Virus record (IMG/VR): IMGVR_UViG_3300032770_000001
Location: 310,001 to 374,000 of that record
Reading direction: 5' to 3' (one strand)
Length of the DNA stretch: 64,000 nucleotides
Under the pieces are notes generated by a model, which did no database searches, had not been told where the DNA came from, and saw only the letters and a list, made by a program, of their open reading frames with translations. Position 1 is the stretch's first letter. Each line of letters opens with the position of its first letter. Positions 3,003 through 52,159 of the stretch are shown in pieces. The position numbers and the translations under genes are program-made.

Positions 3003-3003
3003 C

Positions 3004-3213
3004 ATGGAACGCATTTACGACACCGTCATTCGCTCTATTCGAGCCTTCAAGCCGTACTTCATGGTCGGCAACCGTCACATCGGCTGCGGTCACCGTCACC
3101 GCACGGCTCAGGCGGCACGCAACTGCTTCAAACGGCACGGACTGAGCGCGGGACAATACCGCATCTACCGGGTCGCCACACGCCCGGACATCACCGCACT
3201 GGATCGCGTATGA
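3004..3213 (+). CDS. hypothetical protein
   Basis: GAGGT RBS; CGHxH motif. Confidence 0.6.
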   Translation: MERIYDTVIRSIRAFKPYFMVGNRHIGCGHRHRTAQAARNCFKRHGLSAGQYRIYRVATRPDITALDRV

Positions 3214-32437: not shown

Positions 32438-35400
32438 CTACGAAGATTTTTCGCTTGACAAAAATTCCGCTGAAGTCTTGGTATCTTCATCCCACTCAGG
32501 TTCCCACTTCTCGTACTTTATGAAAATGTGAACGCCTATCGTCTTCACACCCGCCTTCAAAGCAGCGAGCCAGCGGTGGTGCCCGTCCCGTATTTGGTAC
32601 TTGCCGTCCTTTTCAGGCCAAACTGCAATCGCCTTGAACTTGCTTCCGCCCTGTTTCATACGTCTCGCAAAGCGATTGACTTTCTCCGCGTAATGAGTCT
32701 GACCCTGACGTGACATCTGCTCCCCGCCTTCGATCTTCTCAATCGGAACCAACGTAACGTTCGGATCGTAATGGAAGTCCCGGTCATCATTGATGTCCGG
32801 ATCGGGCACCCATGTCACTTCGGGTGCTTTACCCGCAACCTTGGTACGCTTCAGAATCTTGATCTGCTGCGGAGAGAACACGCAGTAGCTCTTACCGCCG
32901 AACTCCGGACTGTTGCCTTCGTCGAGAATCGCGCCATCATACTTCAGGAACCGCAGGGCGTCCATCACGGGCTTGGAATCGATCAGCTTCCACTCCATGC
33001 CGGGATCGGTGACCTCTAGCATGTCGATGTTGATGCCCATCTCTTTCCAGTCCTGTTCGTTTAACTGACCCTCGGTGTACGCACGCAGGGCTTCAAGCAA
33101 TGTACGGGTAGCGTGCTCCGGAGGCGTGGTGCCCATCGGAAGCGGCTGAACATCGACATCCTCATCAATCCAGTTTGGGTTGGTGAAGTCCACCGGGTTG
33201 TTCATGGTGATCTGACAGGTCAGAACGTACTTGTCTCGTTTGTTGCCCGGATTTCCGGCACGGTTCTCAGCCCAATTGACGGCGGTCTGATAGTCCGGCG
33301 TGAAGAAGTAGGCATTGCTGCCGACCGTGACCTCAGCCAATCCCCAGAGTGTGCGCTTCCCAGTTGTAGGTGCGAACTCATTGAAGACGTGCGGAGTGCC
33401 GTGATACATAGTCATTGTCTTGGCAGTCTTTACGGAGCCCTCTTTATAATCTCTCTGCAACCGACGCTGTAGCTCCTGCTTGTGGTACTTGTTGGCGGTG
33501 TAGGGGCTGATCTCAGGCTCAACGATGCCCTTCACTTTGACCTGATTGGGTTTGAACACGATGTAGTCATCGTTGCCGAGAGTCTCATGATGGAGTTCAA
33601 TGACATTCTTGATAATCACCCCATCGTAGCCCCTTTCGTGGGCGAATGAGACGATGCTATCCGTATCGACCTCGTCTCCGTTGAACCAACCCTTCATTGC
33701 TTTTGGCGTCGGAATGGAATAATACCCGTTGTTTTTGGCGTCCACAACGAACGGCTTGTTGATCGTCAGATAGCATTCGTACACGAACGAACCGTATGCT
33801 TGCGCTACCAGTGGATCGGTGCAGAAAAATTTTCCCACCCGGTACTTGGGATCGTTGTGGATGTTATCTGACCACTTGTAGGTGCCGTGGTAAACAGGGC
33901 CGTACTGCTTCGCAACCTTGCCATGCGTGGGATCGAGTTTCAACTGCACACGATAAAGTCCACCATGAACTTTGTCGAGCAACACGGAGTGACCGCGTGA
34001 TTCCCACCACCGTTTGTACTTCAAAGCATCGCTCTTGTTCAGGAGTCCCTCGTCCGACCATCGCTGTTTCTTCGCAGCGGTATGTTCAGTCGGATGCCCC
34101 CAAACCTTCATCATCAGGTGTCCACCCGCAACCATGTCAATGTCTTCGAAATCGTTGTTTTCATACCACTGAATCAGGTTGAACCCCTTAGCTTGCTCCT
34201 CAGCAGTGTCGGCTACCAATAAGCAAAGTTTGGCTCCCCGCGACTCGGCCTCATCGAGAAATTTGTAAAGCAGATCATTTCCGTGTCCCTGACCCCGTGC
34301 GCTATCGTACACGTTGATATTGTTCAGGACAGCGAAATAATCGTATTGCCGTATGTCAGCGACTAACTCTTCGTTCGTGTAATTGAAACGGTCGAGCCAA
34401 TTTTGTAGTTGCTCAGCCGTCGTACTGGCAACGTATCCTTCAGCGGTGCCGAAATCCGTACTTACAACAATCTCCCGCACACCCGCCGCTGTCTTAGATG
34501 CCGTCTTGTTAAACTCATCCAGATCGAGAACCACAACCGCAGGAATGGACTTGGCTCCTAGAATCTTCAGAGCATCGTAGCGATGCGAACCTTCCACGAT
34601 GAACGGACCACCGGGGTCAACGCCAACGATCAGGGGCATCAATTCACCCGACTGTTTGATCTCTTCCGCCAGTTGTTTGGTACGCGGCGTCACATCGGGC
34701 GGCATATCGAACTCATCGAACGGCACTTCCCGGATGCCGTCGAGGATCAGGTAGTTCGGGAAAGTCGCGGCGATGGAACTCATGTTGTCCACCTGATCGA
34801 GAACCGTGCGACCATCTACAACCTGACCTGCCTCCGGGTATTTGACGTTGAACTGAGCTTCCAGATCGTCTTCACTGGAGCCCGTCGTCTCGGATGATCC
34901 CTTCCCGAACGGACGATTCTTCTGCTGCCACAATCCGAACCCAGCAGGGCTCCGGTCGCTGTGGGGGACGACATAATGTCCGACCACTTCCTCGGCGTAC
35001 ATATACATCGCCGTAGCCAAACCTTGACGCCGATACTCAGGTTCGACTTCGGTGTTCGCGGACTGGAGCTTATTGTTTCGCAGAACAAAATCAACGGAAC
35101 CTGCGTACTTTCCCTGCGCGGTCAGCCCTTTCTGAGTCGTATCAAAGGCGCGAACGGTGACTAAATTCCAATTGTTCTCATCGATTTCCAGATCAGGATC
35201 GGTTGGATCGCCATATTCATGGTAGCCGTACTCCAGTTCAAGTTTGAAGTTTTTGTACATGCCGCTACCGTAATCAACATCAACAGGTCCGGCTCCGGTC
35301 TTCTCACCGTCTTCCCAGCCACGCAGATCGATCAGGTACGCCTTAATCATCTGCCCCAGTTCTTTGGCGGCTGCGGTACGGTGATTGCCGTCGAACACAA

Positions 35401-38400
35401 ACAACCCCTCATCGGTATCGATGAATAGGGGGTGAGCCAGATGTTCCTCACTGGCATTCGCCTTCGGCTCGTTGATAAGCTCCGGGTTCTGAAGGAAGTA
35501 ATCGTAATCCGCAGTCACCAGTACGGATTGATCGGTCTTCACGATACTCGGATCGAACTCGTCCAATGGGGCATTGGCAATGTCCTGCTTGCGCTGCTCC
35601 CACGGCTTGCGAGCCCACTCGTCGATCACCAATGGACGTTCGCCGACATAGTCTAGCGTGGTCGGCATCTTGTCGTCGCCTTCCGGCGAAGATGCTCTTT
35701 TGGAATAGGTACGCTGACCACTTAGATTGTAGTTTTGTTTGTAGTCAGCATCGTTGATGTTACCGATTCGTATTTCGCGGACGATATCGTCTAAAGGCGC
35801 GGGTGTGCTTCCGTAGGGCTCGTAATCTTCAAATTGATCCGATGTGGCATCGATATAAGTGTTGTCGATAATTACCCAGCTATGTGGAATACCATTACTG
35901 TACCCATAAGCGATGGATGGACTGTATCCTGCATTTTCCAAGGCATCATAAACAGCGTCGGAAACTGGTTCACAATCTCCATTTTGAGCACGGCGACTAC
36001 CTATCACGCTTTCACGAGCATCCAAAACAATTTCTCGAATATCGGATAGGGACGCCTGTTTCTTTTGCCCGCCTGCGTGCTTTTCGATGATGTCCTTGGA
36101 GTTCTTAAACAGGGCGATGAGGCCGGGGTGGAAACTGCCGGAATCCTCTTCCATCATCTTGTTGATCTCATCCAGCGTGAACCACTCCAGTCCAGTGGTC
36201 TCCCAGTGGTGCTCACTCTGCGGGTGGAAGCTAAACTCGGTGCCCACCAGCCCAATGAAATTGTGGTAGCTGAAGCTGCCGGAACTGAACACGTAAGCCG
36301 GGATCATTGTGACGCCGCCGCCGTATCCCGTTTCCTCTTTCAGTTCGGCCTTGGCCGACTGCGCCAAACCCATACCCTCTTTGACTGCCCCGCCAATAGT
36401 GCCCCAACAGTCGCCGATGTGCACGTCCGGTGAACGCCACGCGAAACAGATACGCTTGGTGGTTGTGCAGATCGGCAGAACGCCTGATGCGGCGTTGCCC
36501 TCTCCAGCCCAAAAGCCCTCATCGTTAAAACCCTCGGCGAGCTTAATGCTAAAGTAGGGCAGCTTGTCTCGTTTATCCCGCTTCTTGGTCACGGGATAGC
36601 GTTGCGAGATGCGCTTCCACGCGGCCTTGGCTTCCGGCGTCTGATCGATACTCGAATTGAATTCTTTGTAGCCCCGCTTCTTGGCTTCAACGATAGCCAT
36701 ATCGTAGAGTTTCTGACCCAGACCTGTGCCACGGTAGGCATCCTCAACGTTGATATCGTAGACGTATGGACCTGCGATGACGGCTCCCTCGGTGCCGATG
36801 TCGATAAAACCGACCGGGCCTTCATACTGAGCGAAAGGACGAGGCATACGGTCTGGTGCCCATGCTCTAATCGTCCAACCACCGTACTCGTTATCGTTTT
36901 CTTCTGTTTCAAAGGTCAGTTTGGAGACATCGCCCTTCGGCACTTCCGATCCGGTCTTCGGGGTCGAGCCCAGCACGATGTAGTAGAGACCCCAGTCGTC
37001 GTCGAAATCGGTCTGGTAACGCTTCTTCAGTTTCTCCCAAACACTTGCCGCTTGCGGACTGTGGTCAATACCCTCATACAGGCGCTCATAACCAAGCTCG
37101 GCAGCTTTTGCAATCCCGGCCTGATAAATTCGCAGGCCGATACCTTGACCCTGAAGGTGTTGAGCGACAGAAGCGGCATCTACCATCAAGCTGTTCTTTG
37201 GAGCACGGGGATTGCCGGGTGCGTCTTCCATCAGTTGGAGGAACACAACACCAACACGTTGTCCCCCCAGTTTCGCGTAGGCTTCCACCCCTTTCGGAAT
37301 TTCCTCGGCGATAACCTCAACCCCATCGGCCAACGCAGCCGTCTTGACGCGACCGACAATACTACACGTGCGGAACGCCCGATCATTCACTTTATCCAAT
37401 TCGAATTTATCGACCTTGAATTGGTACCCACGCCCTAACACGATTTCCTTCTGATAGCCGCCGATGTCCAGATGCCCGGTGCCCTTTGGGACGTTGATGA
37501 TTAACACATCATACTTTTTAAGTCCGATATGCTTCGCAAGCTGATCGAGCCATGCTGGATCACCGTCTAGTGTGCAAGATACAAACCCACGATCAATGAA
37601 ACGGCTACCTTCGTTTGCCATCACAGCATTATCAGGAACAATGCGGTAGACTGTGGTAGCTTCAGGCAGAGGGTTGCTCTCAATGGCTTCATCCAAATCT
37701 AATACGGTCTGCCGATCATTCGTATCGAGATCGTCGTCCTTACGTTTACGTAGCGCCTCGTTGGTATCAACGAACATAACACCTGTGGAATAGTCTTTCT
37801 TCAGCCTATCCACATCATCCTTCACAGCGGAAGTCTTCGTCTGCTCAAGGTACGCCTTAGCTTCATCCGGACGATTCTGAAGACGCCACTTTGCACTGCG
37901 GAGATACGCCTTCTGTGTGCGTTCCGGCAGTTGCTCCCACGATGTTGCTTCGCCGCCACTCAACCAGTCTATGCTTGGAGAACCGAATAGAATCTTCGCC
38001 AGAGCCTCAACAACCTTGGGATCGTTCGGATCGTACTCTTTTGCCGGGGCTGCGGAAGCTTGAGTGGTTTCTTCCTGTCCGGCAACGGGTTTACCCTTGG
38101 CGTCAAGGAAGACAACGTCACGGTCGTAAACGTTGTAATCGGTGCCGCCTTTCTGCCACTTTACTTCAAGCAGACGAGTCGCACCACCGTAATATTGCTG
38201 ACCCACGTCCGGTGCCAAGTTGCGAATCTGCCGGATCACGCCTTTCATGCCATCGGCTTTACGCTGAACCTTAGAACCGATGTCACCCGGCTTCGTCATC
38301 GAAGGATCAACTTCATAGACGCGGGAAGGATCGAATACCACGATCTGATCGCCGTCGAGCAATTTGTGCAAGCCCTTACCCTTGAACCATACGGCATCAT

Positions 38401-41400
38401 ATTTCGACTTCAGGTTTTCGGTCAGCTTCTTGGTCGCCGCGACACGATCCTTCTTCGCCAGTTCAGGATCGTAACCTTGACTGATCCACCATTTCATCAT
38501 GGTCTTCGGGGCACCGAAATTGATGGTCTCCAGACGCGGCACATCGAGATAGTACATCTTCATTCCGCGAGTGGTGCCGCCTGCGAACGTCTTTGCGATA
38601 GACTTGACAGTCGTGAAATAGACGCCATAACCCAGATGGTGAACAGGTGCCGGAATGCCTTCGTGGTACGCCTGATTCTGATAACCGTGCTGGATGTCGC
38701 CGGAGCCTTCTTCGCCCTCGTAGACCACAAAACCCTGATCGCCAATAGCTTCGCGGCGGTCTTCGGTGGTGCCATGATACACCGGGCCGAATAGTTTGCG
38801 GTCGATAGCATCCTGCTGGCTGATGCGATTCATCTTCGCCATCTTGTCAAACACCACACTTGGAATCATCTTCTGAGCCGTAGCCTCTTTGTGTGACAGC
38901 TTAAAGCTCGCAGTCTGCGGTTGCTGTTCAGGCTGAACCTGTTCGACCTCGGTGGGCTCTACGGGCTCTTCCTTCTCCTCAGGCTTGACATACGTATTTG
39001 CGGGCTGTTGCTCACCCGGCTTGAGCCACATGATTTTGTACCCCATGCGCTCATCCCATTGCTTTTTGAAATCCTCAGGCACAGTGCCGTAGTGCACAAC
39101 GATGGGCATCATGCTGCCCTTTTCCTCACGGAAGGCTTCCGGGTCGTTGTAGTAGAACATGAGGTCGCGACCCTCGCGAATCTCCATCACGCATGTGATC
39201 TTGTTGCTGCCGCTATAACCAATGGGCTGCATCGAGCGAGCGTTCTGGAATGACCAGCCGCCTTTCTGCTGAATACGGAGCATGGAACGCAGGGTGCGAG
39301 TCAACTGCTCGGCGGCATTACGAAACACCGCTTCTCCCTGTTCGGTCGTCGGGATCACCGTATCTTTCGGTGGAACCTCAACATCATCGCCCATAACGCG
39401 GCGATAGGTGCGGGTGTAGTCGTAGTTACGGGCGTCGTACCCGTCCTTTTCGATTCGCTTTTGGTCAGACTTGAATGCGTGAGATGTGCGGCGAGTAATA
39501 GACGCCGTGAACACGCCCGGTAGAAGTTCACGAACACGTTTCTCAAGGTTTGCGTCCATCGTTAACTGCGACTCTTCGAGCCGACGCTTGATGGTCGCGA
39601 CGACGCGATCCACATACCGCTGTTGAGAATCAGCGTAAGCCTGCTTCATCGAGTCGGGCGCATTGGGCAGGGTCATCATGAAATGCTCGCCGATCAGGAA
39701 CTCAGAATCATTACCGTGCTCAAACGGAGCATCCAACCACGAAACGATGCTGTCCTCGTCGAGGAATAACGAGTTCGGCTGTCCTTCAACAACCACCATC
39801 ACCATACGATAATCGCCTGCGCTTCTGTTATGGCGAGGAGCGCCGAGAGCCGTCATCAGGTTGCGAGTCAAATAGATTCCGCCGTATGCCTGACGGCTGG
39901 GGCTCGTCATCCCGGCACTGGGATCATCCGCCCACTCTTTGCTCTTACCTTCGGGAACCAAACCTTCGCTCAAAATCGGGCGCAGGTTCTTGATGTCGGT
40001 GCCGTGGTAGTAAATCTGACGGTCAGCGGATTGTTTCTCACGTGGGGACGGAGAGATGTAATTGATGAATGTGTGCATCTCCATCAAAGCGTTCTCTTGG
40101 AACCGAAGCACTGACTGAATCGTGTGTTGTTCGCCGCCGAACTCGTTTTTATAGTCAGCGTACCACTCCTCAGCTTTCGTCAGATTTTCGGCTGCACTCG
40201 TCAACCGCTCCTGCAACATGTTCACATCTTTGCGCTTGGAGGTCTTGAGATACTGCTGGCAGTGGTTAAGCAATGTGAGTAGACGGGGCTGCTGCATCTC
40301 CACAACCGACTCGGCGACCGCAGGTTCGTTTGTGCGGAAGCGAGATGGGTGATGCAGGATAGTATCGTGCTCTGCAAGCAAGGAAGCATAACTCGTAACT
40401 GATCCACGTGGAGCAAATCCGTACCCCGGCTTCCAATCGACCTTGCGGTTTTTCGACGGACCTTTGCGATGAATGATCTTGATCTGCTGCTTGATAAGCG
40501 GTGCCAGACCTTCTGGCAGGCCGAACATGTTGCGCACCTGACCCTTATCATCGATCCAGAAAATCGCGTATTGACCTTCTTCGAACTGTCCGCCAGCCCA
40601 CTGGCTATCCAGAATTCGTTCGCTGAAGATATAGCTGTGATGCCAGTCCTTGCCGTCGCATTCGGCGAAGTCGTGGACTTCCTCGATCACGCCGTCCAGA
40701 ACTGAAGCGGCACCCATAACAAACGGCTTGCCTTTCCACGTGGCGTTATCCCCAGTGACGGCAGCCGCAGCCGCGTACTTCTTGAACGCCTTCGGCGTCC
40801 AGTAAATCTTGTAGTACCCGCCGTACTGATCTTTGGGGTCGTTGTTCGGCTCCTCAACCTTGGAGCAAACGCACTCAGCGACGGGCATCGCGTCGAAAGT
40901 AAAATAGACGGTTTCGCCAGCCAGCAAGATCGGGCGTCCCTTGTAAGCGTAGAACCGCTCCTGTGTCTCTGGGACCTCCCGGAAGAACCCCTCGCGGAAA
41001 TCGGACGGAACTTCGATGTACATCGCCTTCTTTAGCAGGCTGCCAGTCTTGGCATAGGGGTCTACAGTGCCCTGTAATTGCACAGCAAGGCCGCTGTACG
41101 TGCGCCATTCTCCCAAGGCGGACTCACGTGTGCCCAGAGCCCCCGGACGCGGCGTAAAGCTCAGAATCGCGATCTGATCGTCCGGCACTTGACCCAATGC
41201 CTCTACGTTCGAACTGAAAAAGAGAGGATTGAGCGGTCCACCCGCGTTCTCGCGAGCCGCGCACCATGTTTTGTAAAAGTCGAAGGATCGCTCCCGAAGT
41301 TCGGCTTCGGACATCGGCACCTTCCAGTACGACCAGCGGCGATTCCCCTCCGCATCCGTCCAACCATCACCCACGGGTTCGGCATTCGGCATCTCTTCCT

Positions 41401-43417
41401 GCGTCTTGCCCCGGTAGGATGAACTGCTCTCGATCTTTTTGCCCTCAATGAGTGCTTGTAGGTGGATGGGATAAGGTTTGCCGGGTCTCCAGTCCTTGTC
41501 CTGCGTCAAGTACGCCCCGCCCCACGTCACAGCTTCGTACAACCATGAACGCTGTGCTCCCACGCCCTTCTGTGCCATTTCAAGCATCTGAGGCACGGTA
41601 AGCTGCCCGGAGGCAACCTTCTTGCCCTCCACGACCGCAAGGTAAATTCCTTTGGCTATTTCGATGTCCTCAGTAAAGCTAATCGCCATACTGGTGCCGC
41701 CGCCCAACCCAGTACCTTCCGCCATCTGAAGTTGATAGCGAGTCTTCAGACCGCCCGACTGAACCGCAGATAGAGCGGTGGTCACATGGTAGAGAGTCTG
41801 TGGCAGGGGCTTGAATTGGCCCGGCATATAGAGCCCACGTTCCTTAGCGACCGTAGGATCAAGCCGTCCCTCGGAGATCGCCGCCAAAGCCGACTGCTCC
41901 CAATCCTGACGCCGCTTGTGACGTTCACGATTCTGTTCATCGGTCTCTTGCTCGAATATTTCTTGTCCCTTTTCGTCCTTGACGATCTTGGGATACGGGG
42001 CATACTCTTCCCGATTTTGTTCCCACGGCTCACCTGCCGCCGTAATCATCGTACCGGGTTGAACCTCATTTGGCTCTTCGTCATCCAGCTTGATAAGCTT
42101 CAACTGTGCTCCGTCACGCAGAGTGACTTCGTATTCATCGGGATTCTCAAAGTTCGCCACGAACGTCTGCCAAGGATCGACATCATTCTCGCTCTGAACT
42201 TCAGCGGTGATGGTCACCAGACGACCCTTCTTACCGCCCCCGCTCTGCCCCGACCAAAGCGAGGAGCCGCCCCAGTAAGCATCCGCCGCATCCGGGTTGG
42301 TCGTCCAGAATACTCCGGCACCATCCAGTTGGGGCTTTTGACCTTTTGGAACCTCAAGGGCTCGGTAGACGATCAGTGGAAATTCAAGGGTGTTAACCTG
42401 ACCGACCGCCTCGTCATACTTCCACTCCAGTTCCATGCGTTCGTCTTTGCTGCGAGGCAGCGGAAGCCCGTACTTCTGCTTGTAGAACTCTTTCAATGGT
42501 GGGGCATTGAATCTAATGCTGCCAGTCTTGGATGCGGTCGCAGGTTGGGCTTCGGCTTGAGGCTGTTGTTTGATAATCCCATTCTCGTCCCAAGGCAACT
42601 CCTGTTTCTGTTTCACCACAGGAGGCTTGTGCACTTTTGTATCGTAGTAGCTGCGAAGTGCCTGCTGGTATTGAGCCCAGTTGTTGACCACCCAACTTGT
42701 GACATCGCTCAGATCGTCGCTTTCGTAAATTGGGCGATCTTTGGCGTTCACAGGCAACTGCCACGTGCCGTAGTTGTTCATGATCGGCACGATGTCACGA
42801 GCCTCGGAGCCACGGAATATCACCTGAGGCTCATCGTCACCCGTGTGCCAGACCCGGATTCCGGACGCCCGGAAGAGAACTGCGTGCTTGCCGTACTTGG
42901 AACTGCCGCTGCGTGCGCCTGAGTAACGCATGAAATCGGAGAGTAAATAGGCGAAGTTGAAACCACCGGACTTTTTAGCGGCATCGCTGAACCATGTGGT
43001 TAAAGCGACACGATCCATATCGTCCATGCCGTACTTGAATCCGCTGGAAGCGATACCATCGGGATCATCGGTGAAGTGGATGAGCCACTGATTCTTGACC
43101 ATCCCCTCATAGCTCAACGTCAGATAGCTCGGTGCGTCGGCGGGGTTAGCGGATAGGATGGAGTTGGCTTCTTCCTCTTTGAAGCCCTGCATGAGTTTTT
43201 GGGAAAAGACGGACAAGTCCATGTCCATGACGGTATCGACGAGCGTCTCCGGATCATCTTCCTGCGGGAGCTTGTCCGCTTCATCGCTGTTTTGGACGTA
43301 GGCTACGAAATCCTGAGGGAACTTGAATACCATGTCCCGTGCGATGTCGGCATCGCTCATGGTCAGGTATTGTTTCAGCCAGTTAATCTCTTCGCCAAGA
43401 TAAGCCTGTTTTTCCAT
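32438..43417 (-). CDS. giant polyvalent protein (3659 aa): ~8 ART-like, 4 GNAT, 3 ParB-like, NUDIX, transglutaminase-like and unknown modules
   Basis: multiple YHGT/YHVT/VYR ART starts; GNAT RGxGxG loops; Nudix box GGAVKEGMGLAQSAKAELKEETG; DGxHR ParB motifs; C..H..D triad. Confidence 0.85.
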   Translation of the reverse strand: MEKQAYLGEEINWLKQYLTMSDADIARDMVFKFPQDFVAYVQNSDEADKLPQEDDPETLVDTVMDMDLSVFSQKLMQGFKEEEANSILSANPADAPSYLTLSYEGMVKNQWLIHFTDDPDGIASSGFKYGMDDMDRVALTTWFSDAAKKSGGFNFAYLLSDFMRYSGARSGSSKYGKHAVLFRASGIRVWHTGDDEPQVIFRGSEARDIVPIMNNYGTWQLPVNAKDRPIYESDDLSDVTSWVVNNWAQYQQALRSYYDTKVHKPPVVKQKQELPWDENGIIKQQPQAEAQPATASKTGSIRFNAPPLKEFYKQKYGLPLPRSKDERMELEWKYDEAVGQVNTLEFPLIVYRALEVPKGQKPQLDGAGVFWTTNPDAADAYWGGSSLWSGQSGGGKKGRLVTITAEVQSENDVDPWQTFVANFENPDEYEVTLRDGAQLKLIKLDDEEPNEVQPGTMITAAGEPWEQNREEYAPYPKIVKDEKGQEIFEQETDEQNRERHKRRQDWEQSALAAISEGRLDPTVAKERGLYMPGQFKPLPQTLYHVTTALSAVQSGGLKTRYQLQMAEGTGLGGGTSMAISFTEDIEIAKGIYLAVVEGKKVASGQLTVPQMLEMAQKGVGAQRSWLYEAVTWGGAYLTQDKDWRPGKPYPIHLQALIEGKKIESSSSYRGKTQEEMPNAEPVGDGWTDAEGNRRWSYWKVPMSEAELRERSFDFYKTWCAARENAGGPLNPLFFSSNVEALGQVPDDQIAILSFTPRPGALGTRESALGEWRTYSGLAVQLQGTVDPYAKTGSLLKKAMYIEVPSDFREGFFREVPETQERFYAYKGRPILLAGETVYFTFDAMPVAECVCSKVEEPNNDPKDQYGGYYKIYWTPKAFKKYAAAAAVTGDNATWKGKPFVMGAASVLDGVIEEVHDFAECDGKDWHHSYIFSERILDSQWAGGQFEEGQYAIFWIDDKGQVRNMFGLPEGLAPLIKQQIKIIHRKGPSKNRKVDWKPGYGFAPRGSVTSYASLLAEHDTILHHPSRFRTNEPAVAESVVEMQQPRLLTLLNHCQQYLKTSKRKDVNMLQERLTSAAENLTKAEEWYADYKNEFGGEQHTIQSVLRFQENALMEMHTFINYISPSPREKQSADRQIYYHGTDIKNLRPILSEGLVPEGKSKEWADDPSAGMTSPSRQAYGGIYLTRNLMTALGAPRHNRSAGDYRMVMVVVEGQPNSLFLDEDSIVSWLDAPFEHGNDSEFLIGEHFMMTLPNAPDSMKQAYADSQQRYVDRVVATIKRRLEESQLTMDANLEKRVRELLPGVFTASITRRTSHAFKSDQKRIEKDGYDARNYDYTRTYRRVMGDDVEVPPKDTVIPTTEQGEAVFRNAAEQLTRTLRSMLRIQQKGGWSFQNARSMQPIGYSGSNKITCVMEIREGRDLMFYYNDPEAFREEKGSMMPIVVHYGTVPEDFKKQWDERMGYKIMWLKPGEQQPANTYVKPEEKEEPVEPTEVEQVQPEQQPQTASFKLSHKEATAQKMIPSVVFDKMAKMNRISQQDAIDRKLFGPVYHGTTEDRREAIGDQGFVVYEGEEGSGDIQHGYQNQAYHEGIPAPVHHLGYGVYFTTVKSIAKTFAGGTTRGMKMYYLDVPRLETINFGAPKTMMKWWISQGYDPELAKKDRVAATKKLTENLKSKYDAVWFKGKGLHKLLDGDQIVVFDPSRVYEVDPSMTKPGDIGSKVQRKADGMKGVIRQIRNLAPDVGQQYYGGATRLLEVKWQKGGTDYNVYDRDVVFLDAKGKPVAGQEETTQASAAPAKEYDPNDPKVVEALAKILFGSPSIDWLSGGEATSWEQLPERTQKAYLRSAKWRLQNRPDEAKAYLEQTKTSAVKDDVDRLKKDYSTGVMFVDTNEALRKRKDDDLDTNDRQTVLDLDEAIESNPLPEATTVYRIVPDNAVMANEGSRFIDRGFVSCTLDGDPAWLDQLAKHIGLKKYDVLIINVPKGTGHLDIGGYQKEIVLGRGYQFKVDKFELDKVNDRAFRTCSIVGRVKTAALADGVEVIAEEIPKGVEAYAKLGGQRVGVVFLQLMEDAPGNPRAPKNSLMVDAASVAQHLQGQGIGLRIYQAGIAKAAELGYERLYEGIDHSPQAASVWEKLKKRYQTDFDDDWGLYYIVLGSTPKTGSEVPKGDVSKLTFETEENDNEYGGWTIRAWAPDRMPRPFAQYEGPVGFIDIGTEGAVIAGPYVYDINVEDAYRGTGLGQKLYDMAIVEAKKRGYKEFNSSIDQTPEAKAAWKRISQRYPVTKKRDKRDKLPYFSIKLAEGFNDEGFWAGEGNAASGVLPICTTTKRICFAWRSPDVHIGDCWGTIGGAVKEGMGLAQSAKAELKEETGYGGGVTMIPAYVFSSGSFSYHNFIGLVGTEFSFHPQSEHHWETTGLEWFTLDEINKMMEEDSGSFHPGLIALFKNSKDIIEKHAGGQKKQASLSDIREIVLDARESVIGSRRAQNGDCEPVSDAVYDALENAGYSPSIAYGYSNGIPHSWVIIDNTYIDATSDQFEDYEPYGSTPAPLDDIVREIRIGNINDADYKQNYNLSGQRTYSKRASSPEGDDKMPTTLDYVGERPLVIDEWARKPWEQRKQDIANAPLDEFDPSIVKTDQSVLVTADYDYFLQNPELINEPKANASEEHLAHPLFIDTDEGLFVFDGNHRTAAAKELGQMIKAYLIDLRGWEDGEKTGAGPVDVDYGSGMYKNFKLELEYGYHEYGDPTDPDLEIDENNWNLVTVRAFDTTQKGLTAQGKYAGSVDFVLRNNKLQSANTEVEPEYRRQGLATAMYMYAEEVVGHYVVPHSDRSPAGFGLWQQKNRPFGKGSSETTGSSEDDLEAQFNVKYPEAGQVVDGRTVLDQVDNMSSIAATFPNYLILDGIREVPFDEFDMPPDVTPRTKQLAEEIKQSGELMPLIVGVDPGGPFIVEGSHRYDALKILGAKSIPAVVVLDLDEFNKTASKTAAGVREIVVSTDFGTAEGYVASTTAEQLQNWLDRFNYTNEELVADIRQYDYFAVLNNINVYDSARGQGHGNDLLYKFLDEAESRGAKLCLLVADTAEEQAKGFNLIQWYENNDFEDIDMVAGGHLMMKVWGHPTEHTAAKKQRWSDEGLLNKSDALKYKRWWESRGHSVLLDKVHGGLYRVQLKLDPTHGKVAKQYGPVYHGTYKWSDNIHNDPKYRVGKFFCTDPLVAQAYGSFVYECYLTINKPFVVDAKNNGYYSIPTPKAMKGWFNGDEVDTDSIVSFAHERGYDGVIIKNVIELHHETLGNDDYIVFKPNQVKVKGIVEPEISPYTANKYHKQELQRRLQRDYKEGSVKTAKTMTMYHGTPHVFNEFAPTTGKRTLWGLAEVTVGSNAYFFTPDYQTAVNWAENRAGNPGNKRDKYVLTCQITMNNPVDFTNPNWIDEDVDVQPLPMGTTPPEHATRTLLEALRAYTEGQLNEQDWKEMGINIDMLEVTDPGMEWKLIDSKPVMDALRFLKYDGAILDEGNSPEFGGKSYCVFSPQQIKILKRTKVAGKAPEVTWVPDPDINDDRDFHYDPNVTLVPIEKIEGGEQMSRQGQTHYAEKVNRFARRMKQGGSKFKAIAVWPEKDGKYQIRDGHHRWLAALKAGVKTIGVHIFIKYEKWEPEWDEDTKTSAEFLSSEKSS

Positions 43418-43436
43418 CTTGAGTCCCTACAAAGGT

Positions 43437-46400
43437 TTAGGAAGGCTTCTTTTCGACTTTTTCCTGTTCAACAAAGTCCGGGCCTTCAGTTGGCTGAGCC
43501 GGAGCGACTTGCACATCCTGCAACTTTTTCTTTTTGTACACCGTATCCCGGTCGATGCCCAACTGCTTGCAGATCGGGCAGCTACGCGAGAGTCCGCCCT
43601 GATTCTTCAACCGCCGTTCGAAAGCACGGGTGACGGGCTTTTCTGGAGGGGCTCCCCAGATTTTGGCGACCGTGAATGTAAGCCCTTTTCCATGAAGAGC
43701 TTCTATCAGTTTTACGCCTGACGTGTTGTTGTAGTGTTCTTGGATGCGCGTTTGCGCGTCTTTAGCCCAGCCGAGATAGTGCCCAGCGTGGAACTTCCCG
43801 GTGGTAGCATCGGGACGGCTGGATGGAACCGTCTGACCCTGTCCGATGAGGAAGTGGAGGAGATACACCTGACCCGGCTCATTCATCTTGGCGGTCTTTG
43901 GCATAGTGTACGATTCTACATCCTTTTCGACTTCATCCAAAGAGTAGCCAATCGGACCGCCTTCCCAGTCCACGTAACCCTCTTCTTCGCTCAGGACGAC
44001 CTCCATATCTGACCATGAGCCTGCTTTGATCGGCTGCCACTGATCGTGCCAGTACATCTCGATCCGGCTCGGCGGAATGACTTCCTTGACCCATGCCTCA
44101 CGGAACTCTTCTTTTTCCTTAAGCTCATGGACGTTGTAAATCTCAGGTTCTCCAGTCTCCATTGCCATCTCTGGTGGAATGGTGACGCGGAGACAAATCG
44201 GAATAGACGCCTTGCCGTAAGCTTCCAGCGTATCGCGGAACACGATCTCGGCGTAGTACATTGCTCCACCGGGAGTCGGTGCGAAGAACGTCTTATCGTA
44301 ACTGAATTGACCCAACGATCCACCCCATTGCGGATTTTGTGATGGCTTGAGCCCGTTCTTGGCGATAGAGTTAATATTCTTGGCAGCCGTTGCGTGATAG
44401 AACACACGAGGCTCATTCGCTACTTTTGCCGTGACCATCTTGACGGGGGGCTCGATCCAGTTGTCGCCCTCGTACTGGATGCCTTCGAGTTCGAACTGCG
44501 TGCCCTCTTTCAATCGAACCTCTTTTTCCTCGTCCCCAGTGGACGGCATCATGTTGGCACTCAGCGTACCTTCCCAATCCACATCATTCTCGGTGATTAC
44601 GGCGTGCAGCGTGACGCTCGGTCCACCAGTACCCCAATGACATTCAGCGGCGTTCTCATCCCACGACCAGTACACGCCGACGCCTTTGTACTGGATCGAT
44701 TGGAGCCCTTGTTGGTATTCTTCCATCGGTGTGCCGGGAAACAGATGTTGTTGCGCCGGAGCCGGATATTCTCTGCCTCTGGTTTTTGAACCGACCTCCG
44801 GAACGGAAATGCAACGGTACACGTCCATCGGGAACACCCAGCGGTTGTAAGAAGCCACTAGCTCGTTGTACTTGTCTTCGTACTCATCTCTGGCACGTCT
44901 AATCATTTCCTGCTCACGCTGCCGCTGGTTTTTGATGTCCAGATCGTACCCGTATTGTTCTTCGAGTTGAACATCATAAGCGCCAAGAAGTCCCTTCATT
45001 CCGCCCTGCCGACGCAGCCACGTATTAAACGGGGCGAAACGTGCAGCCGAGGTTTTGCCCTGTCCGGACAAACGACTCAAAGTACGGCTGCCGCCCTCAA
45101 CAAACCAGCTTGCCAGATCGCTACGCTGATGCACCACGTTCAAAATTTTGTCAATGATCTGAAGCTTCTGTTCCGGCGATTGCGCCTTCTCCAGTTGGTC
45201 AGCCAGACCCCACAGCGGTTTCATGGCGTAATCGCTGATGCGCCAGTTGCCTTTTTCGTCATCGAAGAACGACGGCACCTGCTCCCAGTAGTCTTCCGGC
45301 AACTGAGCATCCAACATGTCCTGCGCATAAGCACGGGGATTTCCCGTCTCATGTCCAGTGAAGAATGTGTTGATTTGAAGTTTGTAGATGTTTTTGGTAA
45401 TCAACCACGCAATGTCATCAAGACCCTTCTCATCACGCACGTGCCCAGTTTTTGCCCAGTCATTCCAAATCTTGATGAGGCGACCAGCGGGGACAAGCTC
45501 CCACTTCATACGGTATTCCTTGTCGCCGAGATGATCGTTGTACTCGTTCAAAATCTGAAACTCAAGGTCGCTGTACAGTTCGGAATCAAACGCAACTTTG
45601 CGGGAGCCCGTCTTGCCGCTGAAATGTTTGATCGCCCAGCTAAGCGCCTTGGCTTCATCCTTGGCACCGAAGCTCTCCAGCTTTTGAACTTCTTCCTGAG
45701 TCTTCTGCTGTGGATACATCTCATCCCAATTCTCGACAATGTATCGAGCGAAGTAGTGCCACGGTTCATGGATCGCAATAAACTGGCTCGGCGGTACGTC
45801 GCCATTCATGATGACGTGGCGATACCCCTTTGCCCACTCATCCAATTCCTCTTGTGTAGGCTCAACATCATGAATCATGCGATTGCTGTTGGGGTCTTGA
45901 CGCCAGCCCTTATCCGGATAGTTGGCACGTTGACTGATCTGATCTGGTTTCGCCCAAAATTCGACGAATATGTTATTGTGCTCAGGCGGATAACTTGACG
46001 CCCAAACACCAGCCGATGGCTGCGGTCTGCCGGAACCGTCATCTCCGCGAGCCTTGGACGCGAGCAATCCCTGCGAGCGGATGCTTGCCAGATTCGCGTA
46101 ACTCTTAGTGTAATGGTACAGGCGAACGGTGCCCGGTGGTATTGGTGCGGTACCCGGCTCAGGTGCAAGCTCGGACTCACTGTTCACAGAAGCATGTTTG
46201 AGGGTGCCTTCATCCATCGGCTCTTCCCACCACAACTGCGTGCGACGAAGCTTGGGGAATGCTTGACCACCGATGCCCTCAAAGCCGTGCTGCGGCACCA
46301 TGTCATACTGATCGGCGTAAGCCAGCTTGGGTTTCTGGAGCCCCTCCTGAATATATCCTTCCTCATCCACCTGTGACATCGGATCGATGTTCGCACTGTA

Positions 46401-47225
46401 GATTGAAACCCAGCTAGAACCGTTCCAAACTTCAATATCATCCGGCATCAACGTGCCGTTATAGTAGAACGCTTCGGAGCCGGAATCATCAGTGCCGATG
46501 TCGTCCAACTTGAGCTTCCAGTCAGCCTGCTCACGCATACGCAGTACGCACGGAATCAAACCCTCTTCACCGGGTTCGTCAGAATTGTGGTAAGCGAACT
46601 CTTCGGCACGCATGACCCAAAACGAGACGCCTTTGGCGTCGGTCAGGAAGACTTTGCCAGCTTTGTGACCAGCGAGTGCCGGACCTCCGATACCGGATTC
46701 CGCACCGGGCGTTAATCCACCGGAGGCGATGCTATCCAGATTCTTCAAGTAGGTGACGTGGTAGATGTACTTGCCGGGGGAGGCGTATTCATAGCCCTGA
46801 TCGTCATAATCAAACGCGAATTTCTCGGTAAGTTGCCGACCAGCCGTGGGGATGTACTCGTATTTCCACATGCCTTCAATCTGCACTTCATTCAGTTTAT
46901 CGTTTGGAACGAAGAAACCGTCTTCCTTGTGCTCAGTGGTCTGTACGGCATCTTCCGGCACCCGCACTTTGATGATTGCCATCTCCGGCTTGCGGTTCTT
47001 GATTTCAGACCACGGCTTGCCGGAATCGGTCAGCTTCTTCCAGAATTTGCCTTCGGCGACCGAAGCATAAGCCTCGGAATACTTCAGATCGTCATAGAAG
47101 TAGATTCCATCACGTCCTTGCGGTGCGTAGTAGTTTCTCCAAAAACCCTGATCGATGGGCTTGAATCCTTCCGCTTTAATCTTCTCCGCAATTTCGACGG
47201 ACGTGACGTGGTAGAGGGTCAACAT
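43437..47225 (-). CDS. polyvalent protein (1262 aa): ~5 ART-like modules, an unknown module and a C-terminal GIY-YIG-like nuclease
   Basis: LYHVT, IYHVT, LYHYT, VYRC, FYHAT ART starts; 'VYLLHF..HYLGW..RIQEH..ERRLK..CPIC'. Confidence 0.8.
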   Translation of the reverse strand: MLTLYHVTSVEIAEKIKAEGFKPIDQGFWRNYYAPQGRDGIYFYDDLKYSEAYASVAEGKFWKKLTDSGKPWSEIKNRKPEMAIIKVRVPEDAVQTTEHKEDGFFVPNDKLNEVQIEGMWKYEYIPTAGRQLTEKFAFDYDDQGYEYASPGKYIYHVTYLKNLDSIASGGLTPGAESGIGGPALAGHKAGKVFLTDAKGVSFWVMRAEEFAYHNSDEPGEEGLIPCVLRMREQADWKLKLDDIGTDDSGSEAFYYNGTLMPDDIEVWNGSSWVSIYSANIDPMSQVDEEGYIQEGLQKPKLAYADQYDMVPQHGFEGIGGQAFPKLRRTQLWWEEPMDEGTLKHASVNSESELAPEPGTAPIPPGTVRLYHYTKSYANLASIRSQGLLASKARGDDGSGRPQPSAGVWASSYPPEHNNIFVEFWAKPDQISQRANYPDKGWRQDPNSNRMIHDVEPTQEELDEWAKGYRHVIMNGDVPPSQFIAIHEPWHYFARYIVENWDEMYPQQKTQEEVQKLESFGAKDEAKALSWAIKHFSGKTGSRKVAFDSELYSDLEFQILNEYNDHLGDKEYRMKWELVPAGRLIKIWNDWAKTGHVRDEKGLDDIAWLITKNIYKLQINTFFTGHETGNPRAYAQDMLDAQLPEDYWEQVPSFFDDEKGNWRISDYAMKPLWGLADQLEKAQSPEQKLQIIDKILNVVHQRSDLASWFVEGGSRTLSRLSGQGKTSAARFAPFNTWLRRQGGMKGLLGAYDVQLEEQYGYDLDIKNQRQREQEMIRRARDEYEDKYNELVASYNRWVFPMDVYRCISVPEVGSKTRGREYPAPAQQHLFPGTPMEEYQQGLQSIQYKGVGVYWSWDENAAECHWGTGGPSVTLHAVITENDVDWEGTLSANMMPSTGDEEKEVRLKEGTQFELEGIQYEGDNWIEPPVKMVTAKVANEPRVFYHATAAKNINSIAKNGLKPSQNPQWGGSLGQFSYDKTFFAPTPGGAMYYAEIVFRDTLEAYGKASIPICLRVTIPPEMAMETGEPEIYNVHELKEKEEFREAWVKEVIPPSRIEMYWHDQWQPIKAGSWSDMEVVLSEEEGYVDWEGGPIGYSLDEVEKDVESYTMPKTAKMNEPGQVYLLHFLIGQGQTVPSSRPDATTGKFHAGHYLGWAKDAQTRIQEHYNNTSGVKLIEALHGKGLTFTVAKIWGAPPEKPVTRAFERRLKNQGGLSRSCPICKQLGIDRDTVYKKKKLQDVQVAPAQPTEGPDFVEQEKVEKKPS

Positions 47226-50200
47226 TACTCAAACTCCTCCGGGATCAACGTTTCAAGTGCAGGCAATCCCTCGACACCATGCGTGCGCTCCGGGATGTTG
47301 GCGTAGCCATTGTTCTCCAGACCTTCACCGTAATCCCCGCTGTCGTAACGAGTGTCACTCAGAGGCGGCGTTTTATGGGACGAAGATTTGTCAAACGTCA
47401 TCAGGAACGGCCCTTGCTTCAACTTTTCCAAATCAGAGCCAACCAGCGTGCCGAGGTATTCCAAGTCTTCCGGCTTGCACAAGAAGTTGGTGTACTGCTG
47501 CCACGAGTGTTGAACCGCTTCTTCCTTCGTGTAAGAAAGATTAGTCACCTTGGATGGTTCCGACATCAACCGTTCCCAGCCTTTGATAACGTTCTCCACC
47601 TGTTCCTGATGGTGGGAACCTTGGAAGTTTTTAATGCGAGCCACGACCACGGCAGGCTCGCCAGAGATGCGGCTGTTCTTTACGTCACGAGTTGACCACT
47701 TGCCAGTGACGTATGCCTCGATCTGAGCCGCGACCTCACCACCTTGTCCGGCAAAACGGGTCGCAACCTCACCCGCAGGGGTGGTGCTGACCAAGTGGTG
47801 TTCCATCGAATAGCTACGCTCCAGCGACTCCAACGCCTTTTGACGCTTGCGTGGAATCTGATCGATAGTCTTGCCATACTTCGACAGAACCTCGTTGAGA
47901 ATCTCTATGAACTCCAGACCACGGAAGCCATCCTTGGCAATGATCCGGGCGATATCCACCGTGGTGCCGTGATAGACGATCCCCGCACGCCAGTCCTGCT
48001 TAAGCTGCTCCCATGCGTCTGCTGCGGCAGTTTTCTTCGAATTGACTCTACGCAAACTGAGTTGTTCCGGGGTCAGGTCTGGGATGGTCTGCGCCCACGT
48101 AGAGCCGTGGAATGTACCTAGTGGAACCCATGCCTCATAAAGCACGAGCCCACGAGCTTTCAATCCCCGGTCGCGTCCGGCTTGCTGCATTGCCGTGGCA
48201 CCATCCTGCGCCAAGAATGAGCCTTTGCGTAATCCTTCGCGGTCGATGATAGCGGCGGTCGCGGACGGTGTCGCGTGATACAGGCGGACGCGGTTGTTCT
48301 CGATGGGAAGTTTGTTGCGTTCTGCCCAATCACGATTCTTCTCTTCCTGCGTCCACTCCGCGTAGGGTTTGCTGTTTGCTTTCTTGTTCCAAGGATAGTT
48401 CGCCATGTAGTATGCGTATTCTTTCGTGGCAGCTTCTTCCTTTTGTTCACGGGTGAATGGCGCTTTTACTGGGTAGTTCGGGTCTTTCCACACCGCTTCC
48501 GGGATAACAATGGAGTGGTCTTCAGTAATCGGCAGCATTCCGATTCTTGAAAGGTCTGGGTCGTATCCTACAAACTTTTTTGGGTAATGCGTGACGTGAG
48601 CGTGCCCCTTCGAACCGTCCTGCATCTTCCCTTCTGTATCCCACAGCCGCACTTCGACGCTGAAGTTGTTCACGTCGGAGTCAGGCGTCACCTGAATCGT
48701 GACGGTGTCTTTGTAGAACAGCATCTTGCCGTTCTTGAACTCTTTCACCTTGTCCCACATTGCGCCTGCGATCTTGCTGCCGACTTTCTGGATGAAACTA
48801 CCATCCGGAACCACAGCGGAGATCGAGCCCTCATCTTCGCTCACATTCTTGTAGTAGACACCGCGACGAGCCTGACCACGGGTGATTTGACCTCGCATGA
48901 TGCTGTTGGCTTTGAAGTCCTGTCTCGGATCGTTGGGGGTGTTCACCATATCGCCCACAATCTTCACCGGAAAGATGTCCGGCTTCATTGTCGGAGCGAC
49001 CTGAGTACCATCGGAAAACTTTGCTTTATTCGCCCAATCGCCGGGATAGAAATCCTCATCCGGTAGGGGTGTACCCTGTCCCCCTGCGCTATAGCCAGTC
49101 GGGAAAATTCCGTGCTTAGCCAGAGACTTCTTGCCCATGAGTAAAGTCTTGCCGTACTCTCGCGTGCCGTCCCATTCACCCTGTGCCGGGTATCCGATAC
49201 GGGCCGTCAATGCATCCTTTGCGGCTTGGAATGTACCGATGTGCAGCCCATACGCCGCACCACGCAACTCGCCGGATGGCGAACCGTGGTAGTAGGTGGT
49301 GTTATCGACGAACTTCGCCCCAGTCTTTCCTTTCGGTGCGCCCTTGCTGGCTTCGGCAATCCACGCTTCCTGTCCGGCATCGATCATCGCTTTTAGCATA
49401 TTCAAAGTGCTGCGAGCACCATCGAAGTCCCAATTTCCCAACGAAACGGCGGCGTCACGAGCGAGAGTCTGTGGGCGGTTATAAACGCGAAGCGCAGCAT
49501 GAGCTTCAGCATACCGTTTGCTCACTGCCTTAAAATCAGCGATGGCCTCATCCAATGTCTTACCCTTGAGTTTGCCATCTTTCTGCACTCCATAGTTGCC
49601 ACGCATGTTACCTTGCATCTCACGTTCGAAGCCATACGCATTTTCGAGTACACGCAGAACTTTCTCGGTCTTCTCTTTCACGCTGCCGTAACCAAATGAG
49701 CCGTTGATGATGGCGACCCGCTCATTCATGCGGTGGGTGAGATCGCCACAGTGCTCCACCACGAAGCTGTATACTCCGGCTCCGAGTGGGTGGTGTTGGA
49801 TGCGGAGCATGGCGTGCTCCGGGGCCCCACGTTGTTCGTCTGCCAACTCGATAAATGCGGCATACTCTTTCACACGAGCCTCACGCATTTCAGTGTAAGT
49901 CTGGAAGTGTTGCTTCTCTTCAGGATCAGTGATTTCAGCACCGACCTTAGAGATGTCAGCGTTCGGAGCTTCAGCCCAGAGTTTAGCCAGTTTCTCTTCC
50001 ACGTCCTTACTGCGTGCCAAGTTCCAGCCGTTGAATTGTCCGATTTTCGCTTTGCCACGACCGAAGTCGGGATCGTCAGTCTGCACCAGACGATATTCAC
50101 CGCCCTCCCAATTGAGTTTGCTCAGATAATCCATCGCTTGACGACTGAGGTTAAACGCATACTGCCAGCCAAGGCGGACACCGCGAGGGCCGTACTTGAA

Positions 50201-52127: not shown

Positions 52128-52159
52128 GAAGGGTGCGACCGACACGTTGTTTTCCCCGC

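Follow-up and report, generated by a model that had tools for sequence, protein, structure and literature searches.

What are the three giant, abutting open reading frames (ORFs) of a very large phage built from, and to what use would the phage put them? The ORFs, P0001, P0002 and P0003, lie in a window of 64,000 nucleotides (~54% G+C) that comprises bases 310,001-374,000 of the single-contig, 455,708-bp IMG/VR virus record IMGVR_UViG_3300032770_000001. A reading of the letters alone, here termed the sequence-only reading, had placed about 16 ADP-ribosyltransferase (ART)-fold modules of several subtypes between positions 32843 and 49315. All 16 ART-type sites are present at the positions named, and they are graded here as seven strong modules, six moderate ones and three that are candidates only. 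The ART modules would thus number at least 13, perhaps 16, and they appear to represent about ten families that look unrelated in sequence. The locus is probably an operon of polyvalent effectors in a ~456-kb megaphage, whose modules would use nicotinamide adenine dinucleotide (NAD+) or acetyl-CoA against the host at the onset of infection.

P0003, P0002 and P0001 abut on the minus strand, and the gene order of the locus is InPase-RelA/SpoT, JAB, P0003, P0002, P0001 (Table 1). Together, the three giant ORFs consist of ~35 modules of 100-300 aa (~21 in P0001, ~7 in P0002 and ~8 in P0003), 16 of which are candidate ARTs. Interspersed among the ARTs are four GNAT domains, five ParB-like domains and NUDIX, 2H, SprT-like and further domains. 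Neither the locus nor P0002 has a match among 50,697 deposited phage records searched with DNA and by tblastn. Single-sequence phmmer comparison of all three ORFs with PDB chains returned ParB and GNAT matches only, and no ART.

Table 1. Features of the giant-ORF locus and its surroundings. Positions are those of the window; H marks the motif histidine, and grades refer to the support for an ART fold.
Feature	Position	Strand	Protein and residues	Details
P0001	32438..43417	-	3659 aa (open frame)	8 candidate ART modules; four GNAT, NUDIX, three ParB_N-like domains, Cys/His/Asp module (Pfam, PHROG)
P0002	43437..47225	-	1262 aa	5 candidate ART modules; widespread domain aa 550-725, weakly GIY-YIG-like C-terminus
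P0003	47225..51781	-	1518 aa	3 candidate ART modules; ParB-like domain, 2H/LigT phosphoesterase, SprT-like zincin peptidase, conserved C-terminal peptide
ART-PolyVal module	33428..33925	-	P0001 aa 3165-3330	H3177; strong
ART-PolyVal module	32828..33430	-	P0001 aa 3330-3530	H3339; strong
Divergent ART-PolyVal module	38138..38815	-	P0001 aa 1535-1760	H1548; moderate
R-S-E ART (ADPrib_exo_Tox; VIP2/C3/Alt type)	37343..37810	-	P0001 aa 1870-2025	Strong
FP..VYR module 1	42008..42505	-	P0001 aa 305-470	Fold strongly supported
FP..VYR module 2	44406..44993	-	P0002 aa 745-940	Paralogue of module 1
H-x-T module B6	43926..44438	-	P0002 aa 930-1100	H944; strong
H-x-T module B2	46296..46808	-	P0002 aa 140-310	H156; strong by homology to B6
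H-x-T module B3	45606..46178	-	P0002 aa 350-540	H371; moderate
H-x-T module B1	46806..47225	-	P0002 aa 1-140	H6; moderate
H-x-T module A6	39398..40045	-	P0001 aa 1125-1340	H1138; helical extension to ~aa 1500; moderate
H-x-T module A3	41033..41920	-	P0001 aa 500-795	H544, S580-F-T582, E770; moderate to weak
H-x-T module C7	48017..48319	-	P0003 aa 1155-1255	H1169; ~90 aa; moderate
Candidate module A1	42623..43135	-	P0001 aa 95-265	H114; weak
Candidate module C5	48782..49324	-	P0003 aa 820-1000	H832 (H-x-S form); weak
Candidate module C8	47432..48019	-	P0003 aa 1255-1450	H1271; motif only, weak
Non-ART effector block	34073..37330	-	P0001 aa 2030-3115	Pfam/PHROG/PDB searches
Block, first half			P0001	GNAT 2030-2150, GNAT 2155-2290, NUDIX 2300-2450, Cys/His/Asp module 2455-2575
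Block, second half			P0001	ParB-like 2580-2705, GNAT 2710-2845, ParB_N 2850-2970, GNAT 2975-3115
Cys/His/Asp module	35693-36055	-	P0001 aa 2455-2575	
Widespread module	45051-45578	-	P0002 aa 550-725	
Weakly GIY-YIG-like C-terminus	43440-43928	-	P0002 aa 1100-1262	
2H/LigT phosphoesterase			P0003 aa 199-344	48 bits, plus sub-threshold Acb1-like match
SprT-like zincin peptidase			P0003 aa 389-498	PF10263 24 bits, just under cut-off
C-terminal peptide	47228-47419	-	P0003 aa ~1455-1518	
Junction motif, examples			P0001	aa 297, 790, 2025, 2154, 2706, 2971/2975, 3526
Junction motif, examples			P0002, P0003	P0002 aa 538; P0003 aa 36-41, 819, 1250
Prok-JAB metallopeptidase ORF	51594..52145	-	183 aa	PF14464 29.8 bits; upstream, co-directional
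InPase-RelA/SpoT ORF	52160..53731	-	523 aa	PF18823 113 bits, PF04607 43 bits; upstream, co-directional
ClpB/Hsp104-type AAA+ ATPase	30360-31571	+		AAA_2 123 bits plus ClpB_D2-small; ~0.9 kb past the operon 3' end

Two kinds of ART in P0001 are recognised by Pfam, for which the curated gathering cut-offs are 31.2 bits (PF18760, ART-PolyVal) and 23.4 bits (PF03496, ADPrib_exo_Tox). The sequence-only reading had proposed three ART-PolyVal modules (38065-38900, 33431-33910 and 32843-33420) and one VIP2/Alt-like R-S-E module (37345-37825); these coordinates convert properly to P0001 aa 1507-1785, 3170-3329, 3333-3525 and 1865-2025, respectively, and its end point of 49315 to P0003 aa 823. Both proposals hold. 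PF18760 scores 52.4 bits at P0001 aa 3175-3294 and 37.6 bits at aa 3335-3521 (36.3 bits in the genome scan). The third copy scores below the cut-off (21.4 and 19.8 bits at aa 1582-1700), and hhalign aligns it to the aa 3110-3335 module at 90.5% over 127 columns. A purpose-built ART-PolyVal hidden Markov model (HMM) matched it at 9.7e-34, but the module is itself in the alignment of that HMM. In the genome-wide Pfam scan, ART-PolyVal was seen in these ORFs alone and nowhere else in the genome. The R-S-E module scores 43.1 bits with PF03496 at aa 1883-2012, and its catalytic residues are present: V-Y-R at 1923-1925 (R1925), S1947-C-T1949 and Q1989-K-E1991.

The two modules with an FP..VYR motif had been noted from the letters as a pair, and they are indeed clear paralogues (BLASTP E 3e-11; hhalign 100%) with an ART-like fold and R, [ST] and E-x-E placed as expected. 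An alignment of 39 copies (alignment A3), which includes the P0002 module, shows the P, R (R48), G and W to be invariant, and D-W, T and E-x-E (E124 and E126) to be kept in at least 90% of copies. The two FP..VYR modules gave nothing in the Pfam scan, no ART Pfam family was matched by any of the 39 copies, and the family profile had no match among PDB sequences. A word-indexed protein search with the excised FP..VYR module as its query likewise found no match. Such modules are often in tandem in related giant proteins.

The fold was assigned from a predicted model of P0001 aa 305-470, which has a predicted local distance difference test (pLDDT) score of 90.9. In this model, R352 lies on strand one, W371-T372(-T373) on strand two, and E428-x-E430 leads into the strand after the helix, corresponding to the R / S-T-S / E-x-E geometry, with the three elements on or just before model strands 1, 2 and 5. 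Foldseek matches in the PDB are weak (best E 0.09), and nearly all of them are ARTs. Furthermore, when 48,161 chains were scanned with VIA, independently of Foldseek, the top 50 are almost wholly ART-superfamily structures, among them TreX, diphtheria toxin, KptA, PltA, Arr, CARDS, Tne2, MbcT, PARPs, ParT, RES and DarT. Fold relatives in the AlphaFold DB and BFVD are uncharacterised cellular and phage proteins (E to 4.9e-7 and 3.6e-5), and the named neighbours there are Arg-specific ARTs, RES, PARP and ART-PolyVal-like proteins. The ESM Atlas returned unnamed clusters with a TM score of ~0.6, followed by RES and DUF3990. Together with the residue conservation, the model strongly supports FP..VYR as a minimal R-[ST]-ExE ART-like fold with a core of ~110 aa, forming a family without a Pfam model. 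This family has in common with the VIP2/C3/Alt ARTs only the fold and the R / [ST] / ExE logic; there is no detectable sequence similarity, and the FP..VYR core is much smaller.

A second family without a Pfam model is formed by modules B2 and B6 of P0002, which align over 145 columns (hhalign 100%, E 2e-59). Their alignment of 32 sequences (alignment A1) conserves Y-H-x-T, I, G-L, P, L-R and W, and the PDB entries matched by its profile are those of Tpt1/KptA and DarT alone (best E 0.0017). In Pfam, family members weakly match DUF7002, Tpt1, PARP, Tox-ART-HYE1 and DarT. P0002 aa 930-1100 was modelled with AlphaFold2 at a mean pLDDT of 87.2, and the top 50 Foldseek matches of the model are all ART structures (best E 0.011). 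Folding of each module had been suggested together with the sequence-only reading; this and the FP..VYR module are the two that have been modelled, and both are ART-like. The modelled fold is closest to the C-terminal lobe of Tpt1/KptA. Only that lobe (chain residues ~91-183) aligns to B6, and the Tpt1 family PF01885 scores 13.5 bits against a cut-off of 26, over ~27 residues; B2/B6 is therefore described as Tpt1-lobe-like and not as a Tpt1 member. The family has the β1 H-x-T and α1 I...G-L signature in common with Tpt1/KptA and DarT. It is without the N-terminal RNA-binding lobe of Tpt1, and its likeness to Tpt1/KptA in sequence is confined to ~30 residues. Both copies in the window keep the H, an aromatic residue and E. 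A Tpt1-lobe-like H-[FY]-E ART of this kind may act on nucleic-acid ends.

Relatives of these proteins are numerous. When P0002 aa 1-1100 was compared exhaustively by HMMER with 1.84 billion cluster representatives, 2121 proteins matched at E <= 1e-3, many of which are giants of 1,000-5,678 aa that contain the same modules in other orders and numbers. Among the 150 best representatives, related proteins hold 3-6 modules of these families each, with a maximum of 6 per protein. The recurrence of the same modules, reordered, in many giants indicates that the module families are real, widespread and shuffled. The nearest IMG/VR relative is a genome of 463 kb, in which the counterpart is a 3348-aa polyvalent protein (G001:C1:127171-137214, minus strand) with 8 K-T-[AG]-[AGS] motifs and only 4 ART-type modules. 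It shares only isolated modules, and its near lack of collinearity with P0001 points to very fast module turnover.

The signature set of polyvalent proteins is present in the three ORFs (PF18760, PF02195, PF00583, PF10263 and PF13563), with PF18823 in the upstream InPase-RelA/SpoT ORF. As read from domain content, the three ORFs have the polyvalent-protein architecture described previously for phages and conjugative elements (PMC5512222), in which one large phage- or plasmid-encoded polypeptide combines many (2-15 or more) unrelated effector domains; phages seize or disable their hosts with such proteins. Each giant ORF is a string of modules of 100-300 aa that fold on their own. Under the proposed mechanism, which follows the examples of T4 Alt, the P1 Dar proteins and the polyvalent model, they would act at the very start of infection after virion delivery or early synthesis. 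The modules would consume host NAD+ and acetyl-CoA in altering many targets of the host in parallel; these may be proteins and, where Tpt1/DarT-like modules are concerned, possibly the ends of nucleic acids. Nucleotide signals on which host defence relies would be destroyed or mimicked as well. The SprT-like and JAB peptidases of the locus and a NAPRTase/NadV-like gene elsewhere in the genome form a context that fits this mechanism. A protease acting at K-T-[AG]-[AS] junctions would free single modules, and the diversity of ART families would reflect an arms race.

Several results weigh against this proposal. No evidence of virion packaging was found: Pfam detects no MuF or portal domain in the three ORFs, the neighbouring genes carry no annotation, and neither the capsid family PF05065 nor the prohead protease family PF04586 was found genome-wide. 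Genome scans for PF03420 and PF07068 also returned nothing, but their controls were blank as well, so they say nothing on absence. In addition, the third catalytic residue is not invariant in the B2/B6 family, and three modules (P0001 aa 95-265, P0003 aa 820-1000 and P0003 aa 1255-1450) have no significant link to any ART.

The lack of a detected MuF, portal or structural-gene linkage would suit proteins that are not injected at all. These could be intracellular multi-enzyme proteins of the early or middle phase, or a reservoir of spare modules kept by recombination. The genes encoded nearby (helicase, exonuclease, ClpB-like ATPase and glycosyltransferases) and the wholly different module order in the 463-kb relative are consistent with such a role. 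However, among the PHROG families matched by the upstream InPase-RelA/SpoT ORF are those of minor head proteins, virion structural proteins and DarB-like antirestriction proteins. Similarly, weak fold neighbours of the FP..VYR module sit within phage head-morphogenesis, portal and cyanophage pre-ejectosome proteins, and virion delivery is the literature model for such architectures (PMC5512222). An exclusively intracellular role or a reservoir is judged unlikely, and it is the alternative that survives best.

The proposal that the modules are effectors acting on macromolecules can also be set against a reading in which most H-x-T and FP..VYR modules bind NAD+ or ADP-ribose (ADPR) derivatives, or are NAD+ glycohydrolases. 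They would then serve as sponges or destroyers of immune signals (cyclic ADPR isomers, for example), or as decoys for sensors of the host, and only the Pfam-recognised modules would modify macromolecules. In the ESM Atlas, the closest named FP..VYR neighbours are RES-domain NADases and DUF3990, and Tne2, MbcT and RES stand in the PDB list. The absence of an invariant acidic residue from the B2/B6 family fits this reading, and some copies of that family elsewhere may be inactive. The neighbouring 2H (with its sub-threshold Acb1-like match), NUDIX and InPase domains are of signal-degrading types. The phage also has a salvage gene: outside the window, G000:C1:2541-3281 encodes a NAPRTase/NadV-family enzyme (167 bits, in a 483-aa frame), which would imply that a phage rich in domains that consume NAD+ also salvages it. 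Against these points, the near-invariance of R, [ST] and E-x-E over 39 diverged FP..VYR copies is the signature of an active R-S-E transferase. Moreover, both B2/B6 copies in the window keep H, aromatic and E, and no Macro domain, or other partner that removes ADP-ribose, was detected anywhere in the genome. On balance, binders or NADases appear improbable as an account of most of these modules.

How far the count of modifying effectors extends depends on the remaining H-x-T modules. Thirteen [hydrophobic]-[YI]-H-x-[TS] sites occur across the three ORFs, and the strand-1 H is present in all 13 modules. The ten such modules outside ART-PolyVal have only motif-length, sub-threshold Pfam matches (Tpt1, PARP, DUF7002). 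Since the H-x-T modules show almost no pairwise similarity, deeper methods were needed. B3 is linked to B6 by hhalign (96.7%, 54 columns) and by jackhmmer from B6 (1.6e-8), and its sole match in a PDB profile search is DarT1 (E 0.1). B1 is linked to B6 in the same two ways (hhalign 77%, 40 columns; jackhmmer 8.6e-6), as is A6 (hhalign 93%, 57 columns), which also weakly matches KptA and PARP4 in the PDB profile search (E 0.6-1.2) and PARP in Pfam (E 0.045, motif only). Module C7 matches Tpt1 in the PDB profile search (E 0.0064, 52 positions), and hhalign aligns it at 90% to B3 and at 65% to ART-PolyVal. Module A3 carries a large insert. It has 18 stand-alone homologues, none with a Pfam domain, through which hhalign reaches the B6 family at 54.8% over β1-α1-β2. 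The PDB profile search with the A3 family found no ART, only a chance-level match to fumarate reductase. As these links cover mostly 20-57 columns, they are graded moderate.

The three candidates differ from these in their support. In the A1 family (alignment A4), the conserved elements are H, G-G-Y-N-F-A and Q-V-I-F, which could plausibly make up an H-[YF]-Q pattern. No PDB, Pfam or hhalign support was found for the module, and those of its ESM feature leads that carry family names (DarT/PARP, Tox-ART-HYD1 and Arr) are leads only. For C5, for which a single homologue was found, ART-PolyVal clusters make up 23/100 of the ESM feature leads, with PARP and Arr besides; these too are leads only, and hhalign to ART-PolyVal is not significant. 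C8 aligns to B1 by hhalign at 63% over 19 columns; it has no significant match to the B6 family and none in Pfam. When the A1, C5 and C8 families were compared by hhalign with the B6 family and ART-PolyVal, the values were 8%, 3%, 0.7% and 0.3%, none of them significant. Scanning the members of the A1 and C8 families with Pfam brought up no relevant match.

It could be argued that the count is inflated, that only the seven strong modules are ART folds, and that the rest are a short β-α motif unrelated to NAD, remnants or unrelated folds in an ordinary polyvalent set. The shortness of the hhalign links around the motif (mostly 19-57 columns), the lack of significant profile, Pfam or PDB support for A1, C5 and C8, and HMM cross-matches near the decoy noise level all favour this view. 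However, [YFLIVM]-Y-H-x-T occurs 11 times in the 6,439 aa of the three ORFs, whereas the remaining 133,937 aa contain it only 3 times, a ~85-fold enrichment over a background that is a rough ORF set made for the whole genome. The weak PDB and Pfam matches of B3, A6, C7 and the B6 family are, barring some noise, all ART (Tpt1, DarT, PARP), the family-named language-model neighbours of A1, C5 and B6 are ART families, and the sole H-x-T family that was modelled folds as an ART. A count limited to the seven is given little credence.

The figure of about 16 in the sequence-only reading is supported strongly for seven modules and moderately for six, and left at candidate rank for the other three. 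Its many Tpt1/PARP-like H-x-T modules are upheld at least for the B2/B6 family, which has a Tpt1/DarT-like fold, six further modules being tied in mostly by β1-α1-β2 links. Its suggested check of catalytic residues likewise came out in part: R-S-QxE, the FP..VYR R/T/ExE and the 13 H-x-T histidines are in place. However, the strand-5 catalytic residue of the H-x-T modules is placed by alignment only, lacks an assignment in several modules and is variable in B2/B6. Outside the window, a 247-aa ORF (G000:C1:244454-245197) contains Y-H-x-T and has weak cross-matches to the H-x-T and ART-PolyVal HMMs (E 0.9-10), with nothing in PHROGs; it may be a further, stand-alone ART.

The modules are separated in a regular manner. 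A K-[TVI]-[AG]-[AGS] motif stands at nearly every module boundary across 32438-51781 on the minus strand. T[AG][AS] occurs 20 times in the three ORFs as compared with 7.3 +/- 2.5 in shuffles, and K-T-[AG]-[AGS] is 8-fold denser there than in the remaining proteome. In 63 related giant proteins, the junction motif was counted 241 times as compared with 149 +/- 12, and 24% of H-x-T sites are preceded by it at a distance of 4-24 aa, as compared with 4.8% of random positions. Every FP..VYR copy in the alignment of 39 terminates in [VI]-T-A-[AS] or a close variant, and the junction residues are of low confidence or poorly ordered in both predicted models. PHROG annotation of the genome's other K-T-A-rich proteins was uninformative.

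One explanation of the motif, a recombination signal at the DNA level, was rejected, as synonymous codons differ at every junction site; this difference points to constraint on the protein. The most economical reading, and the most likely one, is a protease recognition site that would release single modules. Assemblin-type proteases cut between A and S. The junction protease could be the SprT-like domain within the locus, the JAB protein encoded upstream or a putative prohead protease of assemblin-like 'A|S' specificity. At its fullest, this idea would make the ORFs true polyproteins, cut at K-T-[AG]-[AS] into ~35 single-domain effectors that include two new ART families, and the locus the densest and most diverse viral NAD+ battery known. 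This extension is tentative and is held with considerably less confidence than the polyvalent-effector reading itself.

Further modules and neighbouring genes of the locus provide additional observations. The Cys/His/Asp module in the non-ART block of P0001 has a Cys ... His ... Asp pattern, and its sole Pfam match, YunG, is weak (E 0.005); the order of these residues suggests a papain- or transglutaminase-like peptidase. No other module of the locus is as widespread as P0002 aa 550-725, with matches in ~100 of the 150 best representatives, many of which are stand-alone proteins of ~200 aa. This module belongs to no Pfam or PHROG family, and its motif is not ART-like. The C-terminus of P0002 has a weak GIY-YIG match (E 0.066) and a Cys-x2-Cys / helix-turn-helix (HTH)-like tail, and may be a nuclease or DNA-binding module. 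P0003 ends in a peptide of ~60 residues, S-H-K-T-P-x-L-S-D-T ... N-x-Y-A-x-x-P-E ... E-G ... L, which is found again in at least 13 further giant polyvalent proteins, for the most part at internal positions, and might serve as a signal for docking, targeting or packaging.

At the upstream end, the JAB ORF carries H-T-H-P...D and shares 188 nt (51594-51781), read in another frame, with the annotated 5' end of P0003. A junction-type motif, K-I-T-A-A-S, is already present at the P0003 N-terminus. The true start of P0003 may differ from the annotated one, and JAB could conceivably be joined to P0003 by a frameshift fusion. Past the other end of the operon, the ClpB-type ATPase could conceivably act to unfold or handle giant proteins.

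The locus offers about ten divergent ART families in one operon, each clonable as a module of 100-300 aa. New ART families have repeatedly brought new chemistry, with DNA, RNA and RNAylation targets, and two of the families here have confident ART-fold models, no Pfam family and a wide distribution in metagenomic giant proteins. Correspondingly, the junction motif provides a handle on a question raised in 2017, namely whether polyvalent proteins work at full length or only once they have been split into individual effectors.

The sequence-only reading had taken the three ARTs of T4 (Alt, ModA and ModB) as its yardstick. That comparison is not apt; the proper one is with polyvalent proteins, in which ART is the commonest modifying domain and of which one, from a Pseudomonas prophage, has 12 copies (PMC5512222). 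T4 Alt remains the classic example of a phage ART that is packaged in the head and injected. Like T4 Alt, VIP2 and C3, P0001 aa 1883-2012 has R, S-x-T and Q-x-E, and this R-S-E module is one part of a 3659-aa protein. Virion delivery and possible autoproteolytic release by an embedded metallopeptidase were proposed for polyvalent proteins in 2017 (PMC5512222). Those proteins resemble the present ones in being giant, multidomain phage proteins with ART, GNAT, ParB-like, zincin, 2H, NUDIX, InPase and RelA/SpoT domains. The present locus differs in that its ARTs come from ~ten families and are not repeats of one, at least two of these families are without a Pfam model, and three neighbouring ORFs of a 456-kb phage, in which no MuF/portal anchor was found, share the set between them. 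The K-T-[AG]-[AS] junction motif is a further difference, as a text search of PMC5512222 on cleavage-related terms found no such motif there.

Bacillus phage G, with at least 10 ARTs (PMC9503650), provides the other close parallel: it too is a very large phage with ten or more ART domains and a NadV-type NAD+ salvage gene in the same genome. Unlike in phage G, the ART-PolyVal copies and nearly all H-x-T motifs here are in one 19-kb operon, and no Macro domain was found. Further precedent for this kind of locus is available in the literature (PMC7824862). Because polyvalent proteins and phage G already have many ARTs, loci of this kind were known before; what is notable here is that 13-16 modules of ~ten families, two of them without Pfam models, stand in one operon. 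As the architecture has already been described, what the locus adds is a matter of degree and of further family members, and no new principle.

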